Shown: piece after piece, positions 2,230-25,618 of the stretch
Layout: every line of letters begins with the position of its first letter
How positions within the stretch are numbered: the stretch's first letter is position 1
IMG/VR virus record: IMGVR_UViG_3300018080_000098
Span: 1 to 64,000 of that record
Length of the DNA stretch: 64,000 nt
Reading direction: 5' to 3' (one strand)
The notes under the pieces: generated by a model
Databases searched by the model: none
The model's input: only the letters and a program-made list of their open reading frames with translations
Told to the model about the DNA's origin: nothing
Program-made: the position numbers and the translations under genes

Positions 2230-2268
2230 TTGCTTTTCCTCGCAAGTTGTTTTTCCGTCCGACTGTTC

Positions 2269-2299
2269 AAAAATATCAAACGGAATTTACGTTGTCAAG
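2269..2299 (-). promoter_or_regulatory. sigma70-type promoter TTGACA-N17-TATTTT (representative of about 20 early promoters)
   Basis: Minus strand reads cTTGACAacgtaaattccgtttgaTATTTT. Similar TTGAC(A/G/C) promoters lie near 4478, 5132, 7421, 8431, 11349, 12499, 12783, 14424, 15951, 16879, 20059, 21440, 23097, 23779, 24386, 25593, 26386, 28313, 30974 and 52815. Confidence 0.8.
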
Positions 2300-2315
2300 A
2301 AAAAATCGCGAGCGG

Positions 2316-2492
2316 CTACGGGCGCCAGCCACCTATGCGCCAGAATACGTAGGCTGTTACAGCAGTAGCAACGGCTGTCACTACGTAGTTCCCCAACAAC
2401 AGCCCGCCCATCAACACCATCCCGGTCCCAAAGGCAGGGAGCACCACTGCTGGGTGTAGGACGTAATTGATTTTAAACCGTGGCTTTGTCAT
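2316..2492 (-). CDS. Small membrane protein
   Basis: MTKPRFKINYVLHPAVVLPAFGTGMVLMGGLLLGNYVVTAVATAVTAYVFWRIGGWRP; two hydrophobic segments. Confidence 0.55.
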   Translation of the reverse strand: MTKPRFKINYVLHPAVVLPAFGTGMVLMGGLLLGNYVVTAVATAVTAYVFWRIGGWRP

Positions 2493-2497
2493 CGCGG

Positions 2498-3073
2498 TTA
2501 TCCCATGTTGTCGAGCAGCGCGTCCAGCTTCTCCCCCAGCTTTCCAGTCTTGCGGTGAGCTTCCACGAGCCCCTCCGCCCAACGTGCCATCGACCAGGCA
2601 TCCTTGAACACCTGACCGTTCGCATGGATAACCAGGAACCCTCCACCGAAAGCGCCCTCCCGAGGACTGGAGCACGTCGAGGACCACGTGAGAGAAAGGA
2701 TAGCGTCGTCCTCGGTCACCGCTAGCGCAGCTTCCGCACACGCGCCCAGCGTGTCCAGACTGTCACCCTCATCCGAGTGTACCCACACCTCCGTCTTGGA
2801 GTTCCCTTCCGGCTCCGCGCAGAACGTACCGAAGTGATCCACCGCGTCCAGGATAGTGTTCTGCATCCTGCGCGGCACGCGCTGCCAGGCTTCCACCATC
2901 TCCCGCTCTTCCCCTTCGAGCTCGTCGAAGTAACCCTCCCCGGCCAGAGTGTCCTCGTCGAACTCCTGGTCGTGGACCTTCTCACACACCCGCTGAAGCT
3001 TCAGGAACAAGTCTGCGGCTTCTTCCTTCTCGAATGTGAACGTCTCCGACCACTGGATAAAAGTATCTGCCAT
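2498..3073 (-). CDS. Hypothetical protein, paralog of 10802-11287
   Basis: Shares WSxxCxxPRxGxFGGG with 10802-11287; GAAACGGAG RBS. Confidence 0.8.
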   Translation of the reverse strand: MADTFIQWSETFTFEKEEAADLFLKLQRVCEKVHDQEFDEDTLAGEGYFDELEGEEREMVEAWQRVPRRMQNTILDAVDHFGTFCAEPEGNSKTEVWVHSDEGDSLDTLGACAEAALAVTEDDAILSLTWSSTCSSPREGAFGGGFLVIHANGQVFKDAWSMARWAEGLVEAHRKTGKLGEKLDALLDNMG

Positions 3074-3139
3074 CGCGTTTCTCCGTTTCGCAAATCGTCG
3101 TACTGCCCCGGGATGGCGCAGTAGATATCCACAGTCATC

Positions 3140-3643
3140 CTACTCTGATCCTTTCAGCACTACACTTGCCAGGACACCCAGGGATTCCACCTCGAACGAA
3201 GTGTGCTTCAGATTCATCTTGAAGTGGAAAGACTCCGTGGAGACAACCATCTGGTCTAGCTCCGACCGGATCTGCGTGCCCCCCTGGTAGCTCCACTTCT
3301 CTTCCGCGCAGCGCTCCAGGATATGCTCCAGCACAGAGTTGCCCTCCACCACCTCCACATACTCTTCCCGCTCCAACACTTCGATGAACTCCTGTACCTC
3401 TTCCCGCTCCTCGTCCAGACTATACAGGTCGAACCACGTTCCCCGGTAGTCGAAGAACGTCAGGTTGTTGAACGACGTACCGTGCGCGTCCTCCATAACC
3501 TGTGCGCTGCGTGCGCGCTTTGCCACGTCTGCGCGCAGACGGTCATCCACCTCCAGCAACAGCGTTGGAGTAGTGAACTCAAAGTCCTGCGAGCAAGGGA
3601 AGCAGCGGACCACAAGGTACTGCTTACGAGTTTTCGTCGTCAT
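3140..3643 (-). CDS. Hypothetical protein
   Basis: Start reassigned to MTTKTRK after a GGAGG RBS. Confidence 0.7.
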   Translation of the reverse strand: MTTKTRKQYLVVRCFPCSQDFEFTTPTLLLEVDDRLRADVAKRARSAQVMEDAHGTSFNNLTFFDYRGTWFDLYSLDEEREEVQEFIEVLEREEYVEVVEGNSVLEHILERCAEEKWSYQGGTQIRSELDQMVVSTESFHFKMNLKHTSFEVESLGVLASVVLKGSE

Positions 3644-3645
3644 GA

Positions 3646-3840
3646 TTAGTCCTCCACCACGGCTTCCGTTTCGCACTCCAGACAAATCCAGGTGTTGCCT
3701 TTGTCCGGGCCGTGCGTTACTTCCCCGTTTCCACGGTGGTCTATGAAGTTCCCTTCCTCGTCCACTTCCCAATACTCGGTAATGTGGATCACCGTCTCGA
3801 AACGTTTGTGTTCGGGATTCTTCAGGCATCGAGCTTTCAT
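3646..3840 (-). CDS. Hypothetical zinc-binding protein
   Basis: MKARCLKNPEH...WICLEC. Confidence 0.65.
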   Translation of the reverse strand: MKARCLKNPEHKRFETVIHITEYWEVDEEGNFIDHRGNGEVTHGPDKGNTWICLECETEAVVED

Positions 3841-4067
3841 GGTAGCACTCCATCTCCATCCTCGGGCGGAACCCAAGCGAAAGTCTTGAGCACCGTCCCA
3901 TCGTGATCCACGTACTCTGTGAGCATCGAGCCGCAGCACAAACAGTCGTACTGCTGGTAGGCTCGTCCGCTGCTCTCCGGTCCCTCGTCGTCCTCGGGAA
4001 TCGGGGCGAGCTTCGACCGCTCACTCAGCGGGTGCGTGCAGGTTTGCCATGGGGTTTTGAATTTCAT
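3837..4067 (-). CDS. Hypothetical protein
   Basis: MKFKTPWQTCTH...YDCLCCG; overlaps its neighbours by ATGA. Confidence 0.6.
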   Translation of the reverse strand: MKFKTPWQTCTHPLSERSKLAPIPEDDEGPESSGRAYQQYDCLCCGSMLTEYVDHDGTVLKTFAWVPPEDGDGVLP

Positions 4068-4408
4068 CGCAGCGTCACCTGCTCCGACTCGCCATCCCAG
4101 CGAGCCGTCTGGCTGTTGAATCCTCGGGGAATGACCACCGACACACCCGTCTGCTGGTGCATCAGAATCATCAGGGCCACGGCGTCTCCCTCGTGACGGA
4201 GCTTCATCTTCTCCATGATGTAGTCCACCGTCACGTAGCTGCCCAGATCGTACAGGAAAGACGTGCCACCGTTGTCGCTGTTGCCCAGCCAGGAGATCAG
4301 CCACTTGGTCATGCTGACCTCTGCGAGCACACAGAAGTATCGTGTGCCGTTGCCCGGCTCGTGCTCGACAGTCAGTACCTGTCCCTGGAACTCTTCGGTC
4401 ATCGTCAT
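4064..4408 (-). CDS. Hypothetical protein, paralog of 20300-20635
   Basis: PGNGTRY...YIMEKMKL...DAVALM versus PGNGSRY...YFKEKMGI...DAAALM. Confidence 0.75.
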   Translation of the reverse strand: MTMTEEFQGQVLTVEHEPGNGTRYFCVLAEVSMTKWLISWLGNSDNGGTSFLYDLGSYVTVDYIMEKMKLRHEGDAVALMILMHQQTGVSVVIPRGFNSQTARWDGESEQVTLR

Positions 4409-4493
4409 CTGCTTGTCCTCCGATGCGTTTTTCCATCCGACGCAATCGAGAATATCAAATCAACTTGACGTTGTCAAGAAAAAATTTCGACGG

Positions 4494-4709
4494 CTACACT
4501 ACTCCTTCTTTGTCCATTGCCAGCTCTTCCTGGTAATACTCGTGGGCCACCCGGTCCAAGTCTCCCAGGCAAAGCCTGTGCTCGTCACAGTAGTGCCGCA
4601 GGTCTGCCAGCATGTCGCGCACGATGGTAGCTGGATCGTTGTCCGACGACAGGTAGAACTCGTCGGCGCACTCCTGGATCTTCTTGACGCTCTTGTCGTG
4701 GTAGTGCAT
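4494..4709 (-). CDS. Hypothetical protein (DxLADLRHYCD domain)
   Basis: DMLADLRHYCDE resembles EMLTDLRHYCDT at the C-terminus of 9046-9981. Confidence 0.65.
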   Translation of the reverse strand: MHYHDKSVKKIQECADEFYLSSDNDPATIVRDMLADLRHYCDEHRLCLGDLDRVAHEYYQEELAMDKEGVV

Positions 4710-4711
4710 CT

Positions 4712-5065
4712 CTACTCCTCCGGGCACAGGTCCAGGTTCGTCCGGTAGAAACAAGTCTCCCCCTTGTACTGCCGGTAAACCTCGAAAGCCTTGCGGTGCG
4801 CCCGCTTCGACAGGGGTCGAGTCACACCCGTAGCGAACTCCGTCACGCGCCCGCTCAGGTGAATGCCGAAGCACCCTTCCGGCATGTCCACGAACAGACC
4901 ACCACCCACGTAGTAACTCTTGTGCTCCTCGATACGATTCAGTACCTTGAGCCAGTCCGTCTTGTCCAGACGCTTACGCACCTTAGTCTTTTCGTCTGCG
5001 CTGACCTTCTTGGCTTTCTTCTGCGCGTGCTTCGCCTTACGCTTGACGCTCCAATGCTTGAACAT
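4712..5065 (-). CDS. Hypothetical basic protein
   Basis: MFKHWSV...; GAGGAG RBS after a promoter. Confidence 0.7.
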   Translation of the reverse strand: MFKHWSVKRKAKHAQKKAKKVSADEKTKVRKRLDKTDWLKVLNRIEEHKSYYVGGGLFVDMPEGCFGIHLSGRVTEFATGVTRPLSKRAHRKAFEVYRQYKGETCFYRTNLDLCPEE

Positions 5066-5200
5066 GGGGATTCTCCTCGCAAATTGTTTCCGTCCGACGC
5101 GATCAAAAATATCAAACGCGAAAAAATTTGTCAACAAAAATCGGCGCGTCGAGTGAGCGAGTATGTTATCTTCTACTGTACCCCAAGGAAAAGGTGAACT

Positions 5201-5863
5201 ATGTCTGACCTCCCAACCTACATCAGAGTTGGCGGAGCTCTCTATAAACTTGGCGGTGAAGCAGAGGTAAAGAGTAACGCTGCCAATGAGCTCAGGGAAC
5301 TCATTGGTGCTCTAGTTGCTCTCCCCAGCGATTCTCAGCTTAAATATGAAGTGGCTGAGCAGGCGCAGACTACCCTGCGTCCTGTTGTAAATAAGCTACT
5401 CGACACACGCTACGATCTGCTAACGAGTTCCCCAGCAGAAGCTGCTTCCACATGGAAGGACGCCCGCGATGCCCTGCCTGGAGTCATCGTAGGGTTGCGC
5501 GAAATAATGGCGCCCGTGCGTGACCCTGCGTACATTCAGGACGCGCTACGCTACGTACAGGAAACAGCATTGAAAGTGGACGGGTTTATGTCTGCCTTGG
5601 AGCAAGTACCCCAACGGTTGCAAGCTGACACGCGCGTTGCGGACGACAGACTAACCCGTGCGCAGATGGCCAGCCTCGCACGTTCACATGTTGTGAAAGC
5701 CCTAAACGCTTTCCGCCGTGGGATACCTGAACTAATGCGCATAGTAGATCGAGACTCTGACCTCGAACATTACCTAGATGTTATGGCAACGGAGTTGGAA
5801 GAAGCCCATGATGTTCTCATGGCAGCCTCCTTGAACCAGGACGCTTTCTTTAAGCAGACGTAG
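5201..5863 (+). CDS. Hypothetical alpha-helical protein; one of only two convincing plus-strand genes
   Basis: 220 aa; AAGGTG RBS; fills a gap between minus-strand operons; N-terminus LPTYIRVGGALYKL. Confidence 0.8.
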   Translation: MSDLPTYIRVGGALYKLGGEAEVKSNAANELRELIGALVALPSDSQLKYEVAEQAQTTLRPVVNKLLDTRYDLLTSSPAEAASTWKDARDALPGVIVGLREIMAPVRDPAYIQDALRYVQETALKVDGFMSALEQVPQRLQADTRVADDRLTRAQMASLARSHVVKALNAFRRGIPELMRIVDRDSDLEHYLDVMATELEEAHDVLMAASLNQDAFFKQT

Positions 5864-5876
5864 CCCTACCCCTCAT

Positions 5877-5895
5877 CGTTCGGTTAAACCGAACG
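5877..5895. repeat. 19-bp palindrome CGTTCGGTTAAACCGAACG (5 related copies)
   Basis: Variants at ~8961-8979, ~12991-13008, ~16911-16930 and ~20149-20167; all intergenic. Confidence 0.85.
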
Positions 5896-6000
5896 TCCTG
5901 CCTCGACGCGCCGCGTCGGCCCGACGTCTCCTCGACCTTTTAGGCTATCCAGACCCTCGCAAAATATTTTCGACGGTGCTCGACTGGTAGACTATCCAGA

Positions 6001-6015
6001 ATTTTGTATAGAGAG
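6001..6015. repeat. 15-mer ATTTTGTATAGAGAG (5 exact copies)
   Basis: Also at 20283, 21550, 31628 and 32318. Confidence 0.85.
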
Positions 6016-6018
6016 AAC

Positions 6019-6687
6019 CTACTCCTCGTCCTCTTCCTTCGGCGGGAAAGGCTGCAACGACTCCCGCACTTCCTCCTCCGTCCCCAGCGCCAACTCCTCG
6101 TGGCACAGCCCAACCTCTTCCTCCAGCTTCTTGATCGCTTCCTCGTAGTAGAAGCGTTGCGAGTTGTAGATTTGCCGGATAGCTGCCACCGCACGGATCG
6201 CTCGCTGGATTACACTCCACGCTTCGTCCACCTGCCTCGTGGCATTGTTGATAGCAATGTGACCATCTTTCTCGTACCGCTGAAGACTGGTGCGCAGTAA
6301 CCGGATCTCCGACATCCGACGCTTACGCCCCTCCGGACTCACCCGAAGCTCTTCCCGCTCCGCTGCCCGTGCCGCTTCCTCTTCTGCCTTCACGCGGTCC
6401 CGACGCTCCACAGCTTCCTGCGCCGCAGCTTTACCCAGCGGAGAAAAATCGAAGACGTACACGTTGTAGTGTGTGCCCCACTCTTTGAATACACCATGCT
6501 TGACTAGTACCTTCACCGATGCCATGTGTGCGTATTCACGGTGTAGCGTCATCCTCCCCACTAGATCAGGAGGTTCATACTTCGATGCAACCTCACCGTT
6601 CTCATGAAACGCAATAAGCGCGTGAGTCTGCTTGTCGTTCAAAGACCCGAGCAGCGTGTCAACTTCTTTTTTCTTAGGCTTCGCCAT
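6019..6687 (-). CDS. Hypothetical coiled-coil protein
   Basis: MAKPKKK start follows the GAAACGGAG RBS. Confidence 0.75.
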   Translation of the reverse strand: MAKPKKKEVDTLLGSLNDKQTHALIAFHENGEVASKYEPPDLVGRMTLHREYAHMASVKVLVKHGVFKEWGTHYNVYVFDFSPLGKAAAQEAVERRDRVKAEEEAARAAEREELRVSPEGRKRRMSEIRLLRTSLQRYEKDGHIAINNATRQVDEAWSVIQRAIRAVAAIRQIYNSQRFYYEEAIKKLEEEVGLCHEELALGTEEEVRESLQPFPPKEEDEE

Positions 6688-6704
6688 TGTGCTCTCCGTT
6701 TCGT

Positions 6705-7364
6705 CTAGTCCTCGCTCTTGCTCGACATCGCTCCGAGGATCGCACCCATGACGCCTTCCGGGTCTTCCTTCCACTCCGCGGCATCCCAGTAGGCTACTTC
6801 ACCCACCATCGGATCCACGATGCGCACGTACCCACAAGGCTCCGGGTACGCAGGACTGCGAAGCTCACAGCCCGTCTCCAGCTTGACCACAGTCTCCTTC
6901 GGATACCCATCCCCCGAAACAGACTCGCCCTTGGCTTCCCGCACCAGAGAATCCAGCAGCTCCCCCAGCTCGAAAGCCTCCGCACCACCATCCGACGAAA
7001 TATCCAGCACCCCCGGCGCCAACCTCCGAATCGCCGCCAGCATCAGCACTACCGCCCCATCGTAAGGCTTGTAGGCCGTCTTGCAAAAATCGAAAGCCCC
7101 CTCCCGCTTGAACCGCCCCGCGTCCTCGTAGTCGTACTTCTTCCGCTTCGCCACCCGAATCAGGAAAGTCTCGTGACTGTCCTCGTCCTTCCCGTTGAAC
7201 CGAATCATCTTCTTGGAAATCTCCGGTCCCTTGTCAGGCTTGTCGTACTCGTAACAAAGCACGCCCTCGAACCGCTTCGCCACCAGACGAGCAGCCGCAC
7301 AAACCAGCTTCCACTCCTCGTCCGTGAAGCTCCGGTGTTGATTCCAATAATGCGTGTATCCCAT
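6705..7364 (-). CDS. Conserved phage hypothetical protein
   Basis: MGYTHYW...IRFNG...SHETF...FCKTAYKPYD. Confidence 0.8.
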   Translation of the reverse strand: MGYTHYWNQHRSFTDEEWKLVCAAARLVAKRFEGVLCYEYDKPDKGPEISKKMIRFNGKDEDSHETFLIRVAKRKKYDYEDAGRFKREGAFDFCKTAYKPYDGAVVLMLAAIRRLAPGVLDISSDGGAEAFELGELLDSLVREAKGESVSGDGYPKETVVKLETGCELRSPAYPEPCGYVRIVDPMVGEVAYWDAAEWKEDPEGVMGAILGAMSSKSED

Positions 7365-7437
7365 TTTTCTTTTCTCCGTTTCGCTGCGTTCAAAATATCA
7401 AAACAACTTTACGTTGTCAAGAAAAAAATTCGCCGCC

Positions 7438-7986
7438 TTACTCCGGTAGGATGATAGACGAGAACCGAGCCGCGACATCCGCTTGGACAGGCGCGTCACT
7501 CTTGACTTCCTTAATCGGCTGGGGGATCTCGCGGGGAATATTTTCGAGGGCGTGCTTCAACTGCTTACGTAGCTTCGGGTTGTAACGGATGTCCCCGTTA
7601 TCCAGCGCACGCTCCAGCTGCTCCCTACTGGTGATGTTGTAGTCTGCCCACAGCTTCCGAGCGGTAGCTGGTCCCACGCCAGGCAAGCTCAGGATGTCCG
7701 CCATCGACGGAAGCCCTTTCGCTCGGATAGACTTGAGGCGTCCACAGGTTCCAGTCTGCGTAATTTCCTTGACAGCTTTGGCTGTGCTCTTGCCGATCAT
7801 GGGAATCTTCTGGAGCGCAGTCAATGTCTTCGAGGACACGTCCTCGTCTTCACACCACTCCATGAGTCCGGTAGCAGCATTCTCGAAAGCCATCGCGCGC
7901 CTCTTGTCTCCCAAGATAGCGTAGCCCTGCGACACTTCCATCAGGACTTCGGCCACTTCTTTTCCTGTGGTGGGTTTACTCATCAT
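7438..7986 (-). CDS. DNA polymerase X (PolX/pol beta) N-terminal HhH domains only
   Basis: HhH motifs KIPMIGKSTAKAVKEI and SLPGVGPATARKLW, plus the PolX-like AMAFENAA helix; no catalytic palm. Confidence 0.75.
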   Translation of the reverse strand: MMSKPTTGKEVAEVLMEVSQGYAILGDKRRAMAFENAATGLMEWCEDEDVSSKTLTALQKIPMIGKSTAKAVKEITQTGTCGRLKSIRAKGLPSMADILSLPGVGPATARKLWADYNITSREQLERALDNGDIRYNPKLRKQLKHALENIPREIPQPIKEVKSDAPVQADVAARFSSIILPE

Positions 7987-8374
7987 CTTCTCCGAGAAGC
8001 TGTGCAACCTTCTTAGGGTCCATCCCGTACTCTTCTGGGAAGTCTACCGAGCTTGAGCAGCTGACGCTTTCTACTCGGGCTTGACGTAGGAACGTCCGCA
8101 CTTCCTCGGGATCGTCCGTGGTCAGGTCGGGCTCCCGGTTTGGCACGAAGGGACAAGTCACCTGGAACTTACCATCCACGATAGTAAGGAAAGCACGTTT
8201 GCCCGGGATGGCCTGCGCTTCATGCACCAGCGCACCACAGTCGGGACACTCCCCGTAGGGCACGGGCTCCCCAGGTGAGAGGCGTTCCAACAGATTGGGG
8301 ATGTTGGGAAACCTTACCTTGAAGTCCTTATCCTCGATCTCTCTTTTACAGTCACTACACTCGAACAACCACAT
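7976..8374 (-). CDS. Hypothetical zinc-ribbon protein
   Basis: CSDC...GECPDCG. Confidence 0.7.
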   Translation of the reverse strand: MWLFECSDCKREIEDKDFKVRFPNIPNLLERLSPGEPVPYGECPDCGALVHEAQAIPGKRAFLTIVDGKFQVTCPFVPNREPDLTTDDPEEVRTFLRQARVESVSCSSSVDFPEEYGMDPKKVAQLLGEDDE

Positions 8375-8509
8375 TTGTTTCTCCGTTTCGCATTGCACGG
8401 AAAATATAACAACCGCGCGCCGCCGCGTCAACAAAATTCGGAATTTTTCAGCAGCCTTTTCTTACTTATTCTCTAGCAGACATTCCTATCCACACAGGAG
8501 ATTTCTATC

Positions 8510-8947
8510 ATGGCTAAAGAACTTCCCAACTACATCCGTGTCAACGGCTCATTATATAGACTTGCAGAGCCCCGAGGACCTGAAGCTAAAGGGCTTGGGC
8601 CTGGTGGCGTTTGCACCTGTCCCAAATGTGGAACGGAAACGCAGCACAAAACCGGTGTATCTTGCGTAGACGAAACGTGCCCACAGTGTGGATCGAAAAT
8701 GAAACGCATCGGCAAACGAGCACGACAGGGAGCAATGGAAAGGACCGCCCAACTTCAGCACCTACTCCAACAATTCGAGACACTCACCCAAGCTATTACC
8801 AAAGGTTTGACCGACGCTCACAAAGCTGCCATGGGCAAACAGTTCGACCGAGCTAGCTCTATCCTCCAGCAGATTACCTGCGATAAAATTAACGAGCTCG
8901 CGGAGCTCAGCAATACTATGGCCGGTGTCGTAGGACTCGAGGGCTAG
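8510..8947 (+). CDS. Hypothetical protein with GPGGxCxCPxCG...CPxCG zinc motif
   Basis: CAGGAG RBS; N-terminus LPNYIRVNGSLYRL matches 5201-5863. Confidence 0.8.
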   Translation: MAKELPNYIRVNGSLYRLAEPRGPEAKGLGPGGVCTCPKCGTETQHKTGVSCVDETCPQCGSKMKRIGKRARQGAMERTAQLQHLLQQFETLTQAITKGLTDAHKAAMGKQFDRASSILQQITCDKINELAELSNTMAGVVGLEG

Positions 8948-10209: not shown

Positions 10210-10224
10210 GGCCTACTCCTCCCG

Positions 10225-11772: not shown

Positions 11773-12434
11773 GTGGTCACTCTTTTCTCGAAATGCTCAC
11801 TCCAGATGCTTCCATCCTTGGTGAATTCGTACTCGTTGTTGATGAGTATCTCCTCGACGTGATCGTCCTCGTGGAAGTCGTCGATCAGATCGTAGCCCTC
11901 GTCCGCCAACTTGCGGGAAAGTGCTCTCACGTCTTCCTGGATTGCACCTGCCAGAGCATTGGCCATGCGTTCCATCTCTTCCTCGTGCTCGTCGGGACAG
12001 TCTACCAACTCGACCTCCACGCTCATGGTGTTGTAGTGAGCGTAGTGACTCCCGAAGCTGTTGGGCGAGATATGCAGGGCAAAGGAAAGTTCCTCTTTCT
12101 CCAGCAGTGCGCGGGCCTTCTTTGTGATGCTCCTACGCTGGTCAGCCTCCGCGAATTGCTCCCGCACTACTCGGTCGAAGAGTGCGAGCCCCACATCACA
12201 GCTACCGTAAAACGCCATCCCGTCACCCTGACAATAGGACAGACGCCAACGAATATCCCTCGTAGGATACCCAGCTTCCCCTACGTGGTGCTGAAAATGG
12301 TCCTCCACCCAGAAGCACGCACCCTCGTCCCCGTTCTGCCTTTCCGTATCGGACCACTCCTCCCGCGCAGCCTTCTGCGCTTCGGGGGACAAATCCGAAT
12401 ATTCGTACACTTCGATTTGAATCGTTCGTGACAT
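11769..12434 (-). CDS. Conserved phage/plasmid hypothetical protein (antitoxin-like phage family)
   Basis: MSRTIQIEVYEYSDLS...SYCQGDG...NNEYEFTKDG. Confidence 0.7.
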   Translation of the reverse strand: MSRTIQIEVYEYSDLSPEAQKAAREEWSDTERQNGDEGACFWVEDHFQHHVGEAGYPTRDIRWRLSYCQGDGMAFYGSCDVGLALFDRVVREQFAEADQRRSITKKARALLEKEELSFALHISPNSFGSHYAHYNTMSVEVELVDCPDEHEEEMERMANALAGAIQEDVRALSRKLADEGYDLIDDFHEDDHVEEILINNEYEFTKDGSIWSEHFEKRVTT

Positions 12435-12521
12435 TTCAGCAGCTCCTAGTTGTTTCCATCCGACGCGATCAAAAATATCAAAACCGCCGCGCGCCGTCAA
12501 GAAAATTCGACAAAATATTTT

Positions 12522-14363: not shown

Positions 14364-14439
14364 CGTTTTCTCCGTTTCTCAATTCGTGCGACAAAAATAT
14401 CACACCGAACTTTACGTTGTCAAGAAAAATATTCGACGA

Positions 14440-15331: not shown

Positions 15332-15882
15332 CCTACTACCTCCGTTTCGTTCTGATACACCAGAGAATTGCAGTTGGGACAAATCCCCTGCGGGACCGTG
15401 TCCCCAGGAGAAACCCGATCTACCACCAGCGGGTCGGGCCAACGATACTTCAGCTTGCCTACCGGCCACCGGTTTCTTCCGCACGCAGGATTGCTGCACG
15501 TAAGCACAGGCTCCTCTGCGATAGCCTTCGCCAGATCGTCCAAGCTTACCTCGTCTACCTCACCGCCCCGGTAAACATAAGAGAAAAGAAACCCCTCGCA
15601 GTAGAAGGTCTGGTAGGACCCATCTTCCACAAAAGGCGCAATCTCCTCGTAGAACTTTTCCTCGTAGTTCGACGACCAATTTAAGCTATTCGGATAGGCG
15701 TCCACAATATCTCCATCCTTCGTCATGCTCAACTCGATGCCGAAGTTTGCACAGACGTCATGGACGTCCTCACCTTTCGCAAACTCCTCCCCCAGCGAAC
15801 GCAGGTGCTCCACCATCGCTCCCACGTTTTCCTTTTTGATTTCGATGTTACCACCCTGACCAACGTATGCTGTCATACTCAT
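15319..15882 (-). CDS. Hypothetical protein with C-terminal zinc ribbon
   Basis: Leader carries both conserved motifs; CSNPAC...CPNC. Confidence 0.75.
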   Translation of the reverse strand: MSMTAYVGQGGNIEIKKENVGAMVEHLRSLGEEFAKGEDVHDVCANFGIELSMTKDGDIVDAYPNSLNWSSNYEEKFYEEIAPFVEDGSYQTFYCEGFLFSYVYRGGEVDEVSLDDLAKAIAEEPVLTCSNPACGRNRWPVGKLKYRWPDPLVVDRVSPGDTVPQGICPNCNSLVYQNETEVVGWHP

Positions 15883-15997
15883 GATGTTTCTCCGTTTCGC
15901 TCGTTTCCATCCGACGTGTCAAATATAACAACGCGCCACCGCACGGTCAAGAAAAATCGAATTAAAAAATTTTTTGAACGGGAAAGAAAAGGCGGGG

Positions 15998-17878: not shown

Positions 17879-19609
17879 TTAGTTGCTTCCAGACTTACCG
17901 CCGATCCCACCCATCATCACCGGGCGGAACATTTCCTCACCAGACGGCTGATCCTTCTCCTCACTCTTCGACGCCTGCCGCGCTCCCTTACCCCACTCAC
18001 GCTGACGCGCCAGCTTGCCCTCACTCCAACCTTCCACCACCGGACGAATCTGCTTCGCCTCACTCACGATGTCCGCAGTCTCGATCGCGCGCTCCTCGTA
18101 ATTACTACGCTTGATCGCGTTGATCACTGCCTGCTCCAGCTCTGCACCCGTGAAGTTCTTCGTCGCCTCCGCTACAGCCTTCCAGTCGATGTCCATGTCC
18201 GACACGAACTCGTCAGCTGCCAGACTCTTGAACTTCCGGGCCACCACCTTCAGAACCTTCACCCGGTCTGCCGTGTTGGGCACGTCCACCCAGAACTGGT
18301 CATCGAAACGACCAGCCCGCAGAAACTCCGCGTCCAGAGCCATCGGGTCGTTGCACGTCGCCACGATAAACACCGGCTTGTCGCAGTCCTGCAACCAACC
18401 CAGAATATCCTGGCCAATCCGCCGAGACGTTCCACCATCCGTATCGCCACCACCAGAGAATCCGGCGAACCCTTTTTCGATCTCGTCGATCCACAGAATG
18501 CACGGAGAAATAGCCTCCACCACATCCCGCGCCTTGTACCACCCCTGCTCCGACTCGCCCACGTACTTCCCCATCAGCGCACCCATCGAAAGCTGCACCA
18601 CCGGAAGCTCCCAAGCCGTGCCCACGCACTTCGCCGTCAGAGACTTTCCACCACCCGGAATACCCGCGATCACGATCCCCTGCGGGCGAGGAGTGTACTC
18701 GAAACGCTGCGCGTCCAGGAACGTCTTGTAGGTGATCATCAGATATTCCTTCAGATTATCCAGACCACCAATGGCGCCCAGCCCCTGCGGAATAGTCTCG
18801 ATCCACTTCACCGCCGGGCTCGAGATCAAAGCCTTTTTCGACTGAATGAGAACCGCAGGCTCGAAACGGCCAGTCTCCGCTAGAGACACCGCACAAGCCT
18901 GCTGGGCCTGCTGATCCTCCAGCCCCAGCAGAGCATCCAGTACCTTGTTGTAAACCTCGGAGTTCGCCGCTCGGTCCGGATCGATCTTCCCCTCGTCCAT
19001 GTCCGCGTCCACCGCAGCCTTGTCCTCGTCCGTCTCCGCTCCTAGCAGATGGTAAACGATCTCCATCGAGCTAGCCGCCAGAGACTTCGCCATCCCTTTC
19101 ACCACCAACCCCAACTCCTCACGAGTAGGAAGGTCCAGCTCCACAGGTAGGAAACCGTCCACCGGCTTGTTTCGATCCACTACCACAACCTGCACCCACT
19201 GATTCCCCTTCGATGACTGGGACCGCCGATTCAGGTCCTTCAGCAGCCGCATCGCAGGCACACGTAGAGGAGAGTTCTCCCCCAGGTGATCTGCCATGTC
19301 TTCCATGATCACCAGAGCAGGACCATCATCGTAGTTCCCCAGATACTCCAGCACCCCATCAGGCTGCCCAGCCGGGGGCATGAAGGGAGACTTGCACAGC
19401 ACCGCCAGGTCGTCTCGGTTCTCCCCTTTGTCCGACTCGTTGACCAGCCCCGTGGAACAGCGCCAACGCAGAACCTTCTTGAACCCGATATCCTGAGCCG
19501 CACCCTTGAGCAAAACCTCCGCCCGAGCCTCTTCGTTGGTCCGCGCCCAAAGCAAACCAGACCGCGCTCGAATCAGCTTGCTAAGAGTTTTCATGAATTT
19601 CTGAGACAT
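17879..19609 (-). CDS. AAA+ ATPase (Ycf46/SpoVK-like)
   Basis: Walker A GIPGGGKS, Walker B ILWIDEIEK, SRH LRAGRFD; degenerate N-terminal AAA domain. Confidence 0.9.
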   Translation of the reverse strand: MSQKFMKTLSKLIRARSGLLWARTNEEARAEVLLKGAAQDIGFKKVLRWRCSTGLVNESDKGENRDDLAVLCKSPFMPPAGQPDGVLEYLGNYDDGPALVIMEDMADHLGENSPLRVPAMRLLKDLNRRSQSSKGNQWVQVVVVDRNKPVDGFLPVELDLPTREELGLVVKGMAKSLAASSMEIVYHLLGAETDEDKAAVDADMDEGKIDPDRAANSEVYNKVLDALLGLEDQQAQQACAVSLAETGRFEPAVLIQSKKALISSPAVKWIETIPQGLGAIGGLDNLKEYLMITYKTFLDAQRFEYTPRPQGIVIAGIPGGGKSLTAKCVGTAWELPVVQLSMGALMGKYVGESEQGWYKARDVVEAISPCILWIDEIEKGFAGFSGGGDTDGGTSRRIGQDILGWLQDCDKPVFIVATCNDPMALDAEFLRAGRFDDQFWVDVPNTADRVKVLKVVARKFKSLAADEFVSDMDIDWKAVAEATKNFTGAELEQAVINAIKRSNYEERAIETADIVSEAKQIRPVVEGWSEGKLARQREWGKGARQASKSEEKDQPSGEEMFRPVMMGGIGGKSGSN

Positions 19610-19649
19610 TTCTTTTCTCCGTTTCTTTCCCTACTTGACAACGTCAAGC

Positions 19650-19982
19650 CTAGTGCCCATGCCCATGATGCCCACCACCACCACCCATCAGATGGGCCAT
19701 GTTGTGCTGGTGTACGAAGTTGGCCTGCGTCTGCGCCTGACCCATCGCCTGGCGGAACGCAGCACTGTTACGCTCCTGGAGCTTCGCCAACACACACAGG
19801 TCATACATCCCCTGCGGAAGTTGCGCCCCCACCACGCGGAACGTACCGTCGGGCTGCTTCACGATACGAGCCTGCCCCCGGGCCAAAGCATCCTCGATCT
19901 CCCGGAGCGCTCGCTTACGCTCCTCTTCCAGCCTCTGCCTCTCAGCCTCTGCCATCTTTCTTGCAATCACGTCACACGGCAT
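19650..19982 (-). CDS. Small hypothetical protein upstream of the AAA ATPase
   Basis: MPCDVIARK...; Gly/His-rich C-terminus. Confidence 0.7.
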   Translation of the reverse strand: MPCDVIARKMAEAERQRLEEERKRALREIEDALARGQARIVKQPDGTFRVVGAQLPQGMYDLCVLAKLQERNSAAFRQAMGQAQTQANFVHQHNMAHLMGGGGGHHGHGH

Positions 19983-20299
19983 TTTCTTTCTCCTGTGGTC
20001 TCTGTTTCCGTTTCTCAATCACGCATCAAATATAATGCCGCCGCGTTTTTTCGTCAATCAAATATTTTCGATCACGAATTTTTTTGCCCCTTACTCCCCC
20101 TACTAAACTATCACACCCGCAACCTTCCACCTACTACCCCTCCCCTTCGACGTTCGGTTTAACCAAATATCCATTTCCGAATTCGGACAAATCGGGTCCG
20201 ATTATTTCGGTGTAAAATATCACACGCTTTACGAAGCCTCAGAGGAAACCTGAGCTCGCTCTAGGTTAGTAGACCACCCCTTATTTTGTATAGAGAGAG

Positions 20300-20635
20300 T
20301 TACTCAGCGCAGAGGACCAGACCCTCGTCAGAATATTTCGAGTCGTAACAGCCACACTTATTGTAGCAGCGGGGGAGCACACACATGCGTTTGGTTTCCT
20401 TGGCCACGAGTGCCATGAGTGCAGCAGCATCCTCGTCGTTACCGATGCCCATCTTCTCTTTGAAGTAGGAGGCAGTCAAGTAACCTTCGGGTTGCATAAC
20501 CATGGACTTTCCACCACGACTTCCTCTGTTAGTCCAACAGAATAAAATCATCGGCCAGCCATCGCCGCGCTCCACTTCTCCGATGTAGCACTCGTACCTG
20601 CTACCGTTGCCGGGCATCCACTCGATAAATTTCAC
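20300..20635 (-). CDS. Hypothetical protein, paralog of 4064-4408
   Basis: Shared PGNG(S/T)RY motif. Confidence 0.7.
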   Translation of the reverse strand: MKFIEWMPGNGSRYECYIGEVERGDGWPMILFCWTNRGSRGGKSMVMQPEGYLTASYFKEKMGIGNDEDAAALMALVAKETKRMCVLPRCYNKCGCYDSKYSDEGLVLCAE

Positions 20636-21378
20636 AGGCTTTCTCCTTTCACGATCTTGTCCGCTTTCTTCGCCAGGCTACCGTGCGCCGGGAAGCCGAT
20701 GATTGCTTTGCGGTTGCCCTTGCCACAGACCTTGCAGTCGATACACTGAATGTTCTCGTCGAGGATCGCAGGGCACGTAATGACGTGTCGACCTTTCGGA
20801 GTCTTCAGGCGGCGAGGGGAATCCATCGGAAGGACGGTAACCACGGGGCCGATGTCCAGGTCTGCCAGAGCGTCTGCGTGCTCGAGGTTATCCCCCGACA
20901 GATTCACCACGAAGCCCAGGGCATTCATATCCCGGATCACTTCCAGGTTATGCTGGGCCACCGCAGGGGCGACCATCCCCTTGACGGGGAGGGGGGAGTA
21001 ATGCGTGTACGTGTAGCCGCCACGGTTACGCCCACCCGAACAGTTGGCCCTGGCCAGCTGCAGGCATCGCCCACGATGCAGTCTGTTATTGTACCCCGTC
21101 AGGTCACCAGACTGATTGTGCCGCCACGTAGTTACGTCATCACCCAAGGCTTTTACGCGCTCGCAGAACTCCGTGAAGCTCGTGCCGTTTACGAGCCAGC
21201 CTTTCCCCAACTTGTGCCACACGAGCCCAAGCCGTCCCACCCTGGCGTAGCACGCTTCGCGCATGCGGCAAGAGGAAGGACACGTACCCTTGTGTGACAT
21301 GGATACGGGAAGTTTTCCAGTCTTGCTGTTGCCAGATTTCGGGGTGAGAATAAATAGTTCTTTGTCGGGATGCTCCAT
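20632..21378 (-). CDS. GP88/DUF7227-like Cys-containing phage protein
   Basis: NSKTG...TCPSSC...CYA...RHNQSGDL...CPA...CIDCKVC. Confidence 0.7.
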   Translation of the reverse strand: MEHPDKELFILTPKSGNSKTGKLPVSMSHKGTCPSSCRMREACYARVGRLGLVWHKLGKGWLVNGTSFTEFCERVKALGDDVTTWRHNQSGDLTGYNNRLHRGRCLQLARANCSGGRNRGGYTYTHYSPLPVKGMVAPAVAQHNLEVIRDMNALGFVVNLSGDNLEHADALADLDIGPVVTVLPMDSPRRLKTPKGRHVITCPAILDENIQCIDCKVCGKGNRKAIIGFPAHGSLAKKADKIVKGESL

Positions 21379-21573
21379 TTTTGTTTCTCCGTTTCGTTGC
21401 TCCACCAATCAATTTAATTCGGTGGAACCAGCTTGTCAAGAAATTCAAATTGGACGAATCGGGTCCGATTATTTCGGTGCAAAATATCACACGCTTCACG
21501 GATACTCCAGGGTATTTTCCATTGCGCACGATAAGCTATTGCCCTCCCTATTTTGTATAGAGAGAGCTACCCT

Positions 21574-22122
21574 TTAATTGACGAGAGAAAGGGAAGGGGC
21601 TTTGCGGGAGCCGTCTTCCACGTCGTCGTCTTTGATAGCTACAGCGATGGCTACAGCGTCTCGGAAAGAACGTTCAGTGACGTAGCTTTCAGGCGCGGCA
21701 GCGTCCTCTGCACAGGCTTCTTGGTACGACATTTTGCACGGGCCTGTGTCCGACACTACGCGGCCTGTACGGTTATCTGCCATAGCTGTCCGCGTCAGGA
21801 TGTAGAGCTCGCCATCCTTGCTACCTGTATCGCACGAGGTCATGGTGAGGGCGAAGAGGTGGCTCTCTTCGAGCAGCCTTTGGAACCTTTCCAGGTTGCC
21901 GTTCCTGTTGTCGATAGAGGCAGCTCGAAGTCCGTTGATGTGTAGCTGGAGTTCTCCTGTGGATTCGTCTGGTAGGATGATCATGTTTTGGGGATCGAGT
22001 GAGAGGATCTCCAGGGTAGACCACAGGTGCTCCGGTAGTGTCACCATGACCACCGGGTAGACAGTCCCGGAAAACTGCTGCGCTTGTAAGTCGATGATGA
22101 CCTGTAGGATGTCGTCACTCAT
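21574..22122 (-). CDS. Hypothetical protein
   Basis: ATGA overlap with the upstream gene. Confidence 0.65.
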   Translation of the reverse strand: MSDDILQVIIDLQAQQFSGTVYPVVMVTLPEHLWSTLEILSLDPQNMIILPDESTGELQLHINGLRAASIDNRNGNLERFQRLLEESHLFALTMTSCDTGSKDGELYILTRTAMADNRTGRVVSDTGPCKMSYQEACAEDAAAPESYVTERSFRDAVAIAVAIKDDDVEDGSRKAPSLSLVN

Positions 22123-22673
22123 TGTGCGCCCGCTTCCGCAGCCCGACGTTCTTTCCCTCGGGCTACCATCTCTGCGGCTCGCTCTTCTCCATAACGAGCC
22201 TTCAGATCCTCATGCTCGGGAGTACCCGGAGTCTCGACCGCCTCGGCATAGCGTTGCATTTCCTTGAGCATCGCCACGTCCCGCTCGACCGTAGCCAGTG
22301 CCACAGTCTTTGCGAACCACACCGGGAACAGCTTGTACGACACGTAGCCGCTACCACTCTCGTAGTACGGGACCGGCTCGGGCCAAGTGATGTCCGGGTC
22401 CTCTTTGTCAAGGTAACCCGGGATGCGCTTCTCGAACGCCTTGACGTACACCTTTCGGTAGAAGTCCTCGAACTCCCTCCCGTCCAGCGCTTTGATCTCG
22501 GGAGCGCCCTCATCCTCCATGACCTCGGCAATCTCCCAGTACGCCTTCAGCAGCGCCCTGACGAGTGCCGACGTGTCGTAGCTGTCGAGGTCCGAGATTA
22601 CCGCGCGAAGCACGAGCTCCTTGATCTCCTCGAGTTCTACCGCCTCACGATAAAAGAAAAGTTCCAGTGCCAT
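22119..22673 (-). CDS. Hypothetical protein
   Basis: GAAACGGAG RBS. Confidence 0.7.
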   Translation of the reverse strand: MALELFFYREAVELEEIKELVLRAVISDLDSYDTSALVRALLKAYWEIAEVMEDEGAPEIKALDGREFEDFYRKVYVKAFEKRIPGYLDKEDPDITWPEPVPYYESGSGYVSYKLFPVWFAKTVALATVERDVAMLKEMQRYAEAVETPGTPEHEDLKARYGEERAAEMVARGKERRAAEAGAQ

Positions 22674-22694
22674 GCCGTTTCTCCGTTTCCCCGG

Positions 22695-23036
22695 CTACTG
22701 CCGGTCCTTGTACGCTTTGGCCAGGAATGCCCGGTAGCCCTTCCAATCATGCACTATGCACGGGGCCTCGTCCAGCCAGAGAGGGCTCTCACGCTTACGC
22801 CACTCGCGAGCTTTCTCCATCTCCTCTTCATCGGCGTAGCCTTTTTCACAGGTACACACAACAGGCTCCTTGCGGACTGTCCTGCACCCACTGGCGAAAA
22901 GTGCCTTCACGAGTATGTCGTACTCATTCTCGAACGCCACCATGATCGCCGCCTTGCCCAAGTTGTCACCTGTCCCGATGACAACAATCGCCTTGCGGTC
23001 CAAGCACAGAAGTTCGTAGAGAGTCGGGTCATTCAT
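22695..23036 (-). CDS. Hypothetical protein
   Basis: GAAACGGAG RBS, after a promoter. Confidence 0.7.
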   Translation of the reverse strand: MNDPTLYELLCLDRKAIVVIGTGDNLGKAAIMVAFENEYDILVKALFASGCRTVRKEPVVCTCEKGYADEEEMEKAREWRKRESPLWLDEAPCIVHDWKGYRAFLAKAYKDRQ

Positions 23037-23103
23037 CTCGTTTCTCCGTTTCAAAAATCGTGATCACAAAATATCAAATCGACTTGACGTCGTCAAGTAT
23101 TTT

Positions 23104-23715
23104 TCACGGCCGCTTCCAAATTACTTCGCCGTCGCGCTCCACACGTAAAAGGTAGTTGTACATCTGAGGACGCGGTAGCTTGCTGCGCCCAAGACAATCA
23201 TCTTCCACTAACGCACTTTTGCCGTTGTTGTACACTCCCAGTAACGTGAGGACTTCTTCGTTGCCCATCCCGCCAAAGCACGAGAGCACGAGCTTGTCCC
23301 CCTTCTCCAAATCTTCCGCCAACGGTACTGAACCAGCTTTGGCAGCAGCTTCTTGAAACTCCTTGTCAAAGTAGATAGAATGCCAACGCCGGACGACTGC
23401 TTCAGCCTTGGTGTTGTCTACAGGACGGCCGTCTCTACGCTGGCCAAGCTTCGGGTGCTCCAGGAAAACAATGCTGCACGCACGATTCTTTTCGTACCAC
23501 AGCTTCCCTCCCCAGAACTTTCCCAGGTACATCGCGTGCCGCGTAAGATTGCCTTCGGCCCAGGAAAGTGAAACGCTCAACCCACCATGTTCCGCGGTCC
23601 CATACCACGTTACCCCGCGCTCCAATTGTTGGGAATATTGCGCACGACCCCAGGGAGTAGAAGTTCCTTTGCCTTCCTCGAATCCTTTAATGTCCGCTAC
23701 TTCCACTGTGCTCAT
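23104..23715 (-). CDS. DUF7007-like hypothetical protein
   Basis: TPWGRAQ...TAEHGGLSV...WYE; start reassigned to MSTVEV after GGAGG. Confidence 0.7.
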   Translation of the reverse strand: MSTVEVADIKGFEEGKGTSTPWGRAQYSQQLERGVTWYGTAEHGGLSVSLSWAEGNLTRHAMYLGKFWGGKLWYEKNRACSIVFLEHPKLGQRRDGRPVDNTKAEAVVRRWHSIYFDKEFQEAAAKAGSVPLAEDLEKGDKLVLSCFGGMGNEEVLTLLGVYNNGKSALVEDDCLGRSKLPRPQMYNYLLRVERDGEVIWKRP

Positions 23716-23939
23716 CACAACCTCCAGCAGTTCGCCGTCCGACAACACATATTATGCACAGCAACTTTACGTTGTCAAGTGAAATCGAATTTTATTAGTT
23801 CGAGTGCGAAATATCACGCAAATAGCAGCTACATACCCGTAGCTGGTACTACAACAGGGCTTGGTTATCCGAACCAATAAAATCGGTCATTGCTCAATTT
23901 TGCCCTGCTCGGCCAGCTGGCTCACGTGATTACAGGTAC

Positions 23940-24323
23940 TTAGTGGGTCCCGTTGAGTTCGCGGTTCACTTGTCTGACTACCATTTTCGCTTCTAGGTGA
24001 CCCAGGTCCCCCAACGCTACCAGCAAAACAGACCAAATCACGAAATGTGTGTGAGTAGCCATCAGCCGTTTGGCTGCGCGGCGTCCAGCTATTAGCTCGT
24101 CTCTATCTATCTGGACGGAAACCGTCTTGCGCTCACGCTCATCCGTTACCCATTCTGGGAGTAGCTTCAGACTCTTCTCGTGCTCAAGGATTCCGTGTGC
24201 CGCTGCGTTAGCTGCCGAGACGTAATATTCACCAATCCTTTTACCTGTCTTCTCAGCAGCTTGCTTCACCATTCGTCTGGTCAACAAAGGAATACGCATG
24301 GATATGGCTTGATTATTCTGCAC
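23940..24323 (-). CDS. Putative tandem ribbon-helix-helix DNA-binding protein
   Basis: Two beta-alpha-alpha-like segments: AISMRIPLLTRRMVKQAAEK and TVSVQIDRDELIAGRRAAKR. This is an inference from pattern only. Confidence 0.5.
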   Translation of the reverse strand: MQNNQAISMRIPLLTRRMVKQAAEKTGKRIGEYYVSAANAAAHGILEHEKSLKLLPEWVTDERERKTVSVQIDRDELIAGRRAAKRLMATHTHFVIWSVLLVALGDLGHLEAKMVVRQVNRELNGTH

Positions 24324-24383
24324 GTAATCGACTCCTCGTAATATTGCCTAGCTCCCTCCATGATAATAAAGGACATTACATTG

Positions 24384-24647
24384 TCAAGTAGTTTCCTGAG
24401 CAATATACTCAGACAGCACCCTCCCATCCTTTTTCACGCGGAGCTCCGCCATATCGTACTTCACCAGATGGAATACTACTTCCACGTCGTTCCAGTAGAA
24501 ATGACAATCTGTGTACAAGGAGGCTTCCACGCGACGTACAGCTCGCTGTAGCGTCCGCGATAAAACAATATCCCCCTCGTCTGTCGTTAGATGGGTATGC
24601 TTGAACAGCTGTCGATTGACAACTTCTATACGGCGATTCTTGGGCAA
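24384..24647 (-). CDS. Hypothetical protein (start uncertain)
   Basis: ORF track 24384-24701, trimmed to avoid overlap with parB. Confidence 0.5.
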   Translation of the reverse strand: MPKNRRIEVVNRQLFKHTHLTTDEGDIVLSRTLQRAVRRVEASLYTDCHFYWNDVEVVFHLVKYDMAELRVKKDGRVLSEYIAQETT

Positions 24648-24649
24648 GC

Positions 24650-25519
24650 CTACTCGCCGTCCGCAACCTCGGTCAGCTTCAGCTTCAGCTTCCGAGTACA
24701 CGCCTTCAGCAGCGCCTCCCCGTCAGCCTCACCCGCGGCGAACGTGAGCGCCATGATCACCAGCTTCCGAGCATCCCCCGTGGGCACCGTGTCACCCTTC
24801 ATCTCGGACTGGTTCAGCCCCCGCATGATCTTCACGATGTCACGCTTCCCAGGACGACGGGCCATCCCCGTCACCTGCGCGGCAGCCTTGGCCGTCTTGC
24901 GCCGCTTGCCACCCGAAACCACGAGCACCTTGTCCAGCATCCTCTTCTGGTCCGCAGCCTTCACCTTCCGAGCGATGATCAGCCCAGCCTCGAGAGTCAC
25001 CTTCCCCGTGTCCACCGCGTCCTTCAGAGCCTTGCACGCTCCGGCCATCGTCGTCATCTGGTCCACCCAGCCGACACTCTTGTTGACCTTCACGCTGATC
25101 TCCTTCCCCGAAAACCCGCGCTTCTTGTACTCGCGCACCAGCGCCACCTTGTCCGTCAAGGTGAAGTCCTCTCGGTTCAGATTCTCCTTCACCGCCAGGT
25201 CGAGCGCCTCGTCCTCGTCCACGTCATGCACGATGACAGGAATGCGCATCTCCATCTCCGGGTCCTCGGAGAAAATCTTGCGTAGAGCACGAATGCGCCG
25301 CTCACCCGCAATCAGGATGAAAGGCTGCTCCGGGTTCGCCCGGTCACGCCGCACCCACAGCGGGTCCAGTACCCCGTTCTCCTTGATGTCCTCCGCCAGA
25401 TCCTCGATCCCCTCGAACACCGTTCGCGGGTTGAAACCATCGACCACCTGAATGCGCTCGGGGCTGTCCACCGAGTACGCATTCGACCGAAACACACCAT
25501 CCAACTTTCTCATCGACAT
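24650..25519 (-). CDS. parB: ParB/Spo0J-like partition protein
   Basis: NPR...IEDLAEDIKENGVLDPLWVR...LIAGERRIRA (Box II)...ENLNREDF, followed by an HTH. Confidence 0.9.
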   Translation of the reverse strand: MSMRKLDGVFRSNAYSVDSPERIQVVDGFNPRTVFEGIEDLAEDIKENGVLDPLWVRRDRANPEQPFILIAGERRIRALRKIFSEDPEMEMRIPVIVHDVDEDEALDLAVKENLNREDFTLTDKVALVREYKKRGFSGKEISVKVNKSVGWVDQMTTMAGACKALKDAVDTGKVTLEAGLIIARKVKAADQKRMLDKVLVVSGGKRRKTAKAAAQVTGMARRPGKRDIVKIMRGLNQSEMKGDTVPTGDARKLVIMALTFAAGEADGEALLKACTRKLKLKLTEVADGE

Positions 25520-25618
25520 TTAATCACCTCCGGTAATTTGTTTTCCGTCCGTTCACGCAATCAAATATAATTGCCGAACAATACAACGTCAAGTAAAAAA
25601 TCGAATTTTCTGTGCAGA

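Follow-up and report, generated by a model that had tools for sequence, protein, structure and literature searches.

A 5′-terminal sequence tag shared by about 28 early promoters of an uncultured 350-kb phage matches a predicted loop in a conserved phage small RNA

About 28 early promoters of an uncultured 350-kb phage appear to start their transcripts with the same 12 bases, GTCGGAYGGAAA. These bases are the exact complement of a predicted unpaired segment in a conserved phage small RNA, whose second predicted loop matches a form of the ribosome-binding site that marks the early genes. The most likely interpretation is that the small RNA acts by two-site antisense binding, in which the first segment (region 1) supplies class specificity at the 5′ end and the second (loop 2) covers the Shine-Dalgarno sequence, so that translation of the whole early class would be blocked, and decay perhaps promoted, as the small RNA accumulates. 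We assign this reading a probability of roughly 0.55; the exact start site, the existence of the small RNA as a transcript, the pairing in the cell and the direction of its effect are inferred without transcript data.

The window analyzed here is a stretch of 64,000 nucleotides (positions 1 to 64,000 of IMG/VR record IMGVR_UViG_3300018080_000098). It contains five exact copies of GTCGGAYGGAAA on the minus strand and one on the plus strand, i.e., 6 matches at up to 1 mismatch against 0.89 expected, and none of 100 shuffles reached 6. Each of the five minus-strand copies is located 6-7 nt downstream of a TTGAC-N17-TAnnTT promoter with an A/T-rich upstream region, and 6-10 nt upstream of a GGAG/GAGG Shine-Dalgarno core and start codon. 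These copies, together with partial and degenerate ones, are as follows.

2252..2263, minus strand: tag copy GTCGGACGGAAA; promoter at 2270-2298, 6-nt gap, start codon at 2229.
4430..4441, minus strand: tag copy GTCGGATGGAAA; promoter at 4449-4477, 7-nt gap, start codon at 4408.
5087..5098, minus strand: tag copy GTCGGACGGAAA; promoter at 5106-5134, 7-nt gap, start codon at 5065.
12453..12464, minus strand: tag copy GTCGGATGGAAA; promoter at 12472-12500, 7-nt gap, start codon at 12434.
14381..14392, minus strand: degenerate tag GTCGCACGAATT (4 mismatches) directly after the promoter at 14393-14423, followed by GAGAAACGGAG.
15904..15915, minus strand: tag copy GTCGGATGGAAA; promoter at 15922-15950, 6-nt gap, followed by GAAACGGAGA, which matches loop 2 of the small RNA; start codon at 15882.
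23732..23743, minus strand: partial tag GTCGGACGGCGA, preceded by GTT; promoter at 23749-23778, 5-nt gap.
25542..25553, minus strand: partial tag AACGGACGGAAA; promoter at 25564-25592, gap of about 10 nt.

In the whole genome (349,793 bp), 18 exact copies were found on the minus strand and 1 on the plus strand, whereas a control pattern read backwards gave 0. With up to 2 mismatches, about 28 copies are linked to promoters of the sigma-70 type, and all but one lie in a single 45-kb minus-strand arm that runs across the arbitrary ends of the record. The gap to the -10 element is fixed at 6-7 nt in nearly all of them, while the distance to the Shine-Dalgarno sequence varies. Since transcription from sigma-70 promoters generally starts 7 +/- 1 nt after the -10 element, the motif should form the first 12 nt of these transcripts. 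Sigma-dependent pausing was considered and rejected, because the motif has no -10-like sequence. It is very unlikely that the motif is a passive carry-over of recently duplicated promoter cassettes and that its match in the small RNA is a coincidence. Some promoters are clearly related copies, for example those at 4430 and 347741. However, the spacer, discriminator and downstream leader sequences differ widely while the 12-mer is kept, the motif is also kept in phages whose BrxL-like protein is only 67-81% identical, and only about 0.08 exact matches per genome are expected by chance.

An earlier note on this sequence inferred RNA-RNA pairing from the observation that the motif varies only where G-U wobble preserves pairing with a “tRNA-like” RNA segment. 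Among the five full copies in the window, the only variable base is indeed position 7 (C at 2252 and 5087; T at 4430, 12453 and 15904), which faces the G of UUUCCGUCCGAC in the small RNA. The conclusion of the note is supported by the evidence presented below, but its own argument fails genome-wide. Across the approximately 28 promoter-linked copies, 9 of 18 substitutions break pairing (C7>A, A11>C twice, A12>C twice, G1>A twice, U2>A and A10>C), mostly at the motif ends. The excess of wobble-compatible transitions (9 against 2) is only marginal (p about 0.03-0.09), and the copies are not independent.

The only plus-strand copy in the genome lies in a putative structured RNA gene with its own promoter, which is encoded at the upstream edge of the early arm and comprises the following elements.

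26767..26794, minus strand: promoter of the small RNA, TTGACA-N17-TATACT, with no tag after it.
26628..26758, minus strand: small RNA gene of about 131 nt, with a closing stem GGAGCG/CGCUCC, an inner helix, two hairpins and a 3′ T-arm-like hairpin (26641-26657).
26717..26728, minus strand: region 1 of the small RNA, UUUCCGUCCGAC, in the loop of helix 4; the exact complement of the tag.
26677..26685, minus strand: loop 2 of the small RNA, UCUCCGUUU, which complements the early-gene ribosome-binding-site form AAACGGAGA.
26401..26598, minus strand: 65-aa ORF immediately downstream of the small RNA, with no Pfam or PHROGs match.

Homologs of this RNA are found at the same syntenic position in 11 related phage contigs, giving 12 phages in total, and a gene of 58-104 aa follows the RNA in the relatives whose contig continues. 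In the present genome, however, no terminator separates the RNA from the ORF, and the RNA could be the leader of that ORF. Alignments across clades by MAFFT and RNAalifold were poor and were replaced by an alignment guided by a covariance model, in which 93.5% of cells are paired against about 40% in slid controls, and 14 pairs show compensatory changes. The “tRNA-like” label of the note is weak, because it rests on the T-arm-like hairpin, which several homologs lack. ARAGORN found no tRNA or tmRNA gene in the window and none at 26.7 kb in the whole genome, and no Rfam family, including tRNA, tmRNA and C4, matched the minus strand at 26628-26758 even at E up to 10. Rfam scans also found nothing at a second structured RNA. 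A role as a natural external guide for RNase P was rejected, because the acceptor-like stem is closed within the RNA itself. A scan of IMG/VR for the 3′ end pattern found ordinary tRNAs apart from the two known records, and a three-block pattern gave 16 new loci, none of which was confirmed by the covariance model.

Region 1 and loop 2 are both predicted to be unpaired, with opening costs of 3.8 and 0.6 kcal/mol, respectively (probability unpaired of loop 2, 0.92). The duplex energy of region 1 with the tag is -22.1 kcal/mol with C at position 7 and -20.3 kcal/mol with U, whereas RNAduplex on whole leaders and RNAcofold were uninformative. Loop 2 (CUCCGUU) is the complement of AACGGAG, which lies upstream of 21 of 86 early starts (24%) but only 8 of 523 others (2%; p = 2.4e-13). 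In a sister phage (G005), CGGAG occurs at 42% against 12% (p = 3e-10). Of the 12 small-RNA homologs, 11 keep CUCCGU in a hairpin loop, and the remaining one (contig L139) has CCUCCAUU. On the other hand, the two sites pair in a non-colinear order and are only 1 nt apart in some leaders, so simultaneous binding may not always be possible.

Alternatively, the tag may be an RNA element that acts in cis and is read by a protein or the ribosome, such as a standby 30S site, a translational enhancer or a site for an RNA-binding protein, with the small RNA not being its main partner. The tag is purine-rich with two GGA units and resembles the early ribosome-binding site (CGGA-CGGA against ACGGAG), and the +1 motifs of other clades, GAGGC and GCGGGAGA, are also similar to Shine-Dalgarno sequences. 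This alternative is nevertheless doubtful, because a perfect 12-nt complement inside a 131-nt RNA has a chance expectation of about 1e-5 by our calculation and is conserved in 4 phages, with 10 nt conserved in a fifth. Furthermore, no candidate RNA-binding protein was found next to it.

Comparison between clades suggests that the +1 motif and the small RNA are matched within a phage. The initial transcribed regions of clade A, which carries the tag, have a mean longest Watson-Crick run of 7.4 with their own small RNA (z = +19), but about 5 (z about 0) with small RNAs of other clades. Clade C uses the +1 motif YGAGGCR, and its small RNA has an unpaired CCGCCUCA; this support is modest, however, with z about 3, a 6-8 bp match, and one foreign small RNA that scores as well. 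In another relative (L136), CUGGACGAACGGAGG forms a 15-bp duplex of -31 kcal/mol with its own loop 2. Within clade A both partners are invariant, and thus there is no compensatory change for the 12-mer itself; in the contig L050, complementarity is shortened to 10 bp. By contrast, region 1 of the G005 small RNA (UCCUCGACCGAC) is not complementary to the +1 motif of G005. The early leaders of this sister phage instead form 5′ hairpins within each transcript, with varying but complementary stems, which shows RNA-level selection at +1 in this lineage.

These observations also bear on the possibility that the motif is a DNA-level operator, at which a phage or host protein binds +1 to +12 to switch early promoters off or on, with the inverted copy in the small-RNA gene as one more binding site. 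The fixed distance to the -10 element, the degeneracy of position 7, as in many protein-binding sites, the simple conservation of motif and anti-motif within clade A, and the lack of complementarity in G005 are all compatible with this reading. However, it seems unlikely, because the site is asymmetric and occurs in one orientation relative to transcription at every promoter, and the single inverted copy falls exactly in a predicted unpaired loop of a structured RNA. Nor does this reading explain the second loop, the early-specific ribosome-binding-site signature, the own-RNA matches in clade C and L136, or the RNA hairpins at +1 in G005.

Another possibility is that the same pairing has the opposite effect, in which the small RNA closes the 5′ end of early mRNAs into a duplex and protects them from 5′-end-dependent RNases, doing in trans what the G005 leaders do in cis. 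The hairpins of G005 occupy the position at which clade A carries the tag, the tag sits at the extreme 5′ end, and FasX and ska in Streptococcus may provide a precedent for stabilization by small-RNA pairing at an mRNA 5′ end. This model is also unlikely, since loop 2 covers the Shine-Dalgarno sequence, which normally blocks translation, and in L136 a single continuous duplex spans the tag and the ribosome-binding site.

The logic of two exposed segments is already known from the C4 antisense RNA of phages P1 and P7, in which one loop occludes a ribosome-binding site and the other pairs with an upstream sequence and sets specificity, such that a few base changes alter specificity (PMC5320573; PMC12197685). 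Homology to C4 is not shown. C4 acts on one operon of a temperate phage, whereas the RNA described here would act on about 28 transcription units and up to about 80 early genes of a very large, probably lytic, phage, and its upstream site is the very 5′ end of the transcript. Temporal control in large lytic phages is usually explained by promoters, sigma factors and polymerases; a single antisense RNA that recognizes both a shared tag and a class-specific ribosome-binding site would be a post-transcriptional switch for a whole gene class, and a keyword search of a 2025 review of phage small RNAs returned nothing comparable. It is possible, although unproven, that phages of this lineage mark a whole temporal class of mRNAs in this way, that one small RNA reads both marks to switch the class off or to protect it, and that tag and reader co-evolve between clades, so that each clade has its own “address code.”

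The phage itself gave no match to known phages by megablast, and its best DNA polymerase hit among cultured phages is about 27% identical. The small RNA family was found only in sediment and water metagenomes.

The 349,793-bp virus record, of which the window is the first 64 kb, was obtained from a sediment metagenome and has a 100-bp terminal overlap, so that its start point is arbitrary. It encodes a family A DNA polymerase fused to a uracil-DNA glycosylase domain, gyrase/topoisomerase IV subunits, a protein kinase, a ParB-like protein and an AAA ATPase, and it carries 18 tRNA genes, of which 16 cluster at 183-259 kb, whereas the tRNA-His and tRNA-Tyr genes (genome 333,715-333,877, minus strand) lie inside the early arm described below. 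The phage has no close cultured relative: there was no nucleotide match to known phages, and the best DNA polymerase hit is about 27% identical. Within the window, GC skew is negative in 31 of the 32 2-kb bins (about -0.03 to -0.32), which fits nearly all genes being on the minus strand. Notable coding regions of the window are as follows.

29492-30973, minus strand: a phage-encoded BrxL-like protein with the BrxL N-terminal and ATPase domains but without the Lon protease domain.
47805-49502 and 56580-57851, minus strand: a protein with a eukaryotic-type protein kinase domain, and an RlaP-like nucleotidyltransferase that also matches the MRG domain family.
60096-63086, minus strand: the family A DNA polymerase fused to an N-terminal uracil-DNA glycosylase domain and a 3'-5' exonuclease domain.

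The motif GTCGGAYGGAAA (the tag) is present on the minus strand at 2252, 4430, 5087, 12453 and 15904, and on the plus strand at 26717, giving 6 matches against 0.89 expected, and none of 100 shuffles reached 6. Two partial copies exist at 23732 and 25542. In the whole genome there are 18 exact minus-strand copies and one plus-strand copy, whereas the backwards-read control pattern gave none. Allowing up to 2 mismatches gives about 28 promoter-linked copies, 27 of which lie on the minus strand between 330 kb and the record end, or between 1 and 26 kb, namely in one continuous arm of about 45 kb (the early arm). The only promoter-linked tag-like copy outside this arm lies at 203,659-203,670 on the plus strand and reads GTTGGGCGGAAA after TTGACA-N17-TATACT; both of its differences from the consensus are wobble-compatible. 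An exact GTCGGATGGAAA copy with no promoter was found at genome 339,746-339,757 (minus strand), inside the 3' end of a coding region just before a terminator-like hairpin, where the chance expectation within the early arm is about 0.006. In the exact and one-mismatch copies, the motif starts 6-7 nt after the -10 element of a TTGAC-N17-TAnnTT promoter that has an A/T-rich upstream region, while degenerate copies have gaps of 4-10 nt, and the distance from the motif to the GGAG ribosome-binding site varies from 1 to about 50 nt. Because sigma-70 RNA polymerase starts 7 +/- 1 nt after the -10 element, it is inferred, in the absence of transcript data, that the motif should be the first 12 nt of these transcripts.

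The plus-strand copy lies in a minus-strand small RNA gene at 26628-26758, which has its own promoter (TTGACA-N17-TATACT at 26767-26794) and no tag. Homologs of this RNA were found in the same intergenic gap in 11 related contigs, which were reached through a conserved BrxL-like ATPase; the gap lies 2-3 kb downstream of the gene encoding this protein and, where the contig continues, just upstream of a gene of 58-104 aa. The BrxL-like protein is conserved in all the relatives fetched (54-81% identical to that of the window), whereas bacterial BREX BrxL proteins of about 690 aa are about 47% identical. A covariance model built from three close members of the RNA family recovered four more distant ones, and found no paralog in this genome. 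On the resulting alignment, 93.5% of cells pair, against 34-46% when partners are slid by 1-3 columns, and 14 pairs show changes on both sides, although the alignment is fitted to the model and these counts therefore lean towards the structure. All 12 RNAs share one predicted plan, comprising a long closing helix, an unpaired segment (region 1), a hairpin whose loop (loop 2) carries CUCCGU(U) in 11 of the 12 (CCUCCAUU in L139, one of the related contigs) and, in many relatives, a U-run after the closing helix. In this genome, the RNA has no terminator, so it may be released by processing or may act as the leader of the downstream 65-aa ORF. The earlier note described the RNA as tRNA-like. This resemblance rests on a T-arm-like hairpin next to an acceptor-like stem; the hairpin is present in this genome (G000), in the sister phage G005 and in the contig L134, but L050 keeps the GGTTCGA sequence and pairs it into a long rod, L129-L131 have a different loop, and three clades lack the arm altogether. 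Neither ARAGORN nor Rfam recognizes the RNA.

Region 1 in this genome is UUUCCGUCCGAC, the exact complement of the tag. The same 12-mer is kept in L129, L130 and L131, and 10 of the 12 nt are kept in L050, while the flanking stems change. The tag itself recurs at promoters in L050 and L129, with looser variants in L130 and L131. The calculated duplex energy is -22.1 kcal/mol with C at position 7 and -20.3 kcal/mol with U at this position, whereas the cost of opening is 3.8 kcal/mol for region 1 and 0.4-3.2 kcal/mol for the mRNA 5' end. Loop 2, on the other hand, complements an extended ribosome-binding site. Within 30 nt upstream of a start codon, AACGGAG occurs in this genome at 21 of 86 starts (24%) in the early arm but at 8 of 523 (2%) in the rest of the genome (Fisher p = 2.4e-13), and in G005 CGGAG occurs at 42% against 12% (p = 3e-10), whereas the ordinary form AAGGAG shows no such bias in either genome; these counts are based on crude ORF calls. 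Early genes therefore carry two marks, and both match parts of the same RNA that are predicted to be exposed.

To examine whether the tag and the RNA change together across clades, initial transcribed regions, with the ribosome-binding site removed, were compared with the small RNAs from each clade. The regions (n = 58) of clade A, which carries the tag, have a mean longest Watson-Crick run of 7.4 with clade-A small RNAs (z = +19), whereas with the others the run is about 5 (z about 0). Clade C (L135, L138 and L139) starts its transcripts with YGAGGCR, and its small RNA has CCGCCUCA in an unpaired internal loop (probability unpaired 0.97); however, the statistical support is modest (z about 3), and one foreign RNA scores as well. 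L136 starts its transcripts with CUGGACGAA next to the ribosome-binding site, and its own loop 2 is extended to CCUCCGUUCGUCCGG, which gives a 15-bp duplex of -31 kcal/mol. L134 has the ribosome-binding-site form GACGGAGG, and its small RNA has CCUCCGUC rather than CCUCCGUU. By contrast, G005 does not fit; its +1 motif GCGGGAGAAA has no complement in its small RNA. The early leaders of this sister phage (L008-L011, minus strand, 20-42 kb) instead fold into short 5' hairpins, the stems of which differ between genes yet stay complementary (GCGGG/CCCGC, GGCG/CGCC and GGGCGG/CCGCCC, with z from -2.5 to -4) and the loops of which are rich in AGAAACCAAC-like sequence. This at least shows RNA-level selection at the 5' end in this lineage.

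The earlier note argued for pairing on the grounds that the motif varies only where G-U wobble preserves it. In the window, the only variable position is indeed Y7, which faces a G. Across about 28 copies, however, there are 18 substitutions, nine of which are wobble-compatible (C7>U four times, C3>U twice, A11>G twice and A6>G once) and nine of which are not (G1>A twice, U2>A, C7>A, A10>C, A11>C twice and A12>C twice). In the core (positions 3-9), 7 of 8 are wobble-compatible, and the disruptive changes sit mostly at the ends, where they shorten the duplex rather than abolish it. Tolerated transitions outnumber disruptive ones 9 to 2 (one-sided binomial p of about 0.03), or 7 to 2 without the 203,659 copy (p = 0.09), and the copies are not independent of each other. 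This pattern is suggestive but cannot carry the conclusion alone.

The best-supported reading, which is inferred from computational evidence alone (the relatives number only twelve, and most contigs cover only part of the early arm), is a two-site antisense RNA, as in P1/P7 C4 RNA. In C4, one loop partly occludes the ribosome-binding site and the other binds upstream sequence and sets specificity (PMC5320573; PMC12197685). Here, the upstream site would be the 5' terminus, and the targets would be a whole temporal class. Repression of early translation seems the most likely outcome, because loop 2 covers the Shine-Dalgarno sequence, while protection of the 5' end is the main alternative. A DNA operator, a cis element bound by a protein, and passive duplication are less likely.

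A second promoter-driven structured RNA of about 190-220 nt was noticed outside the window (L001:5035-5256, minus strand; genome 334,834-335,055). It has an acceptor-like stem (GCCCCA/UGGGGC) and a T-arm (UCCCGG-UUCAAAU-CCGGGA), as well as an internal GGAGG plus AUG-AAG-UGA mini-frame, and it contains motif-like GUCGAAUGGAAA and anti-motif-like UUCCCUUCCGAC segments. It has no Rfam or ARAGORN match, and its fold z is -4.0.
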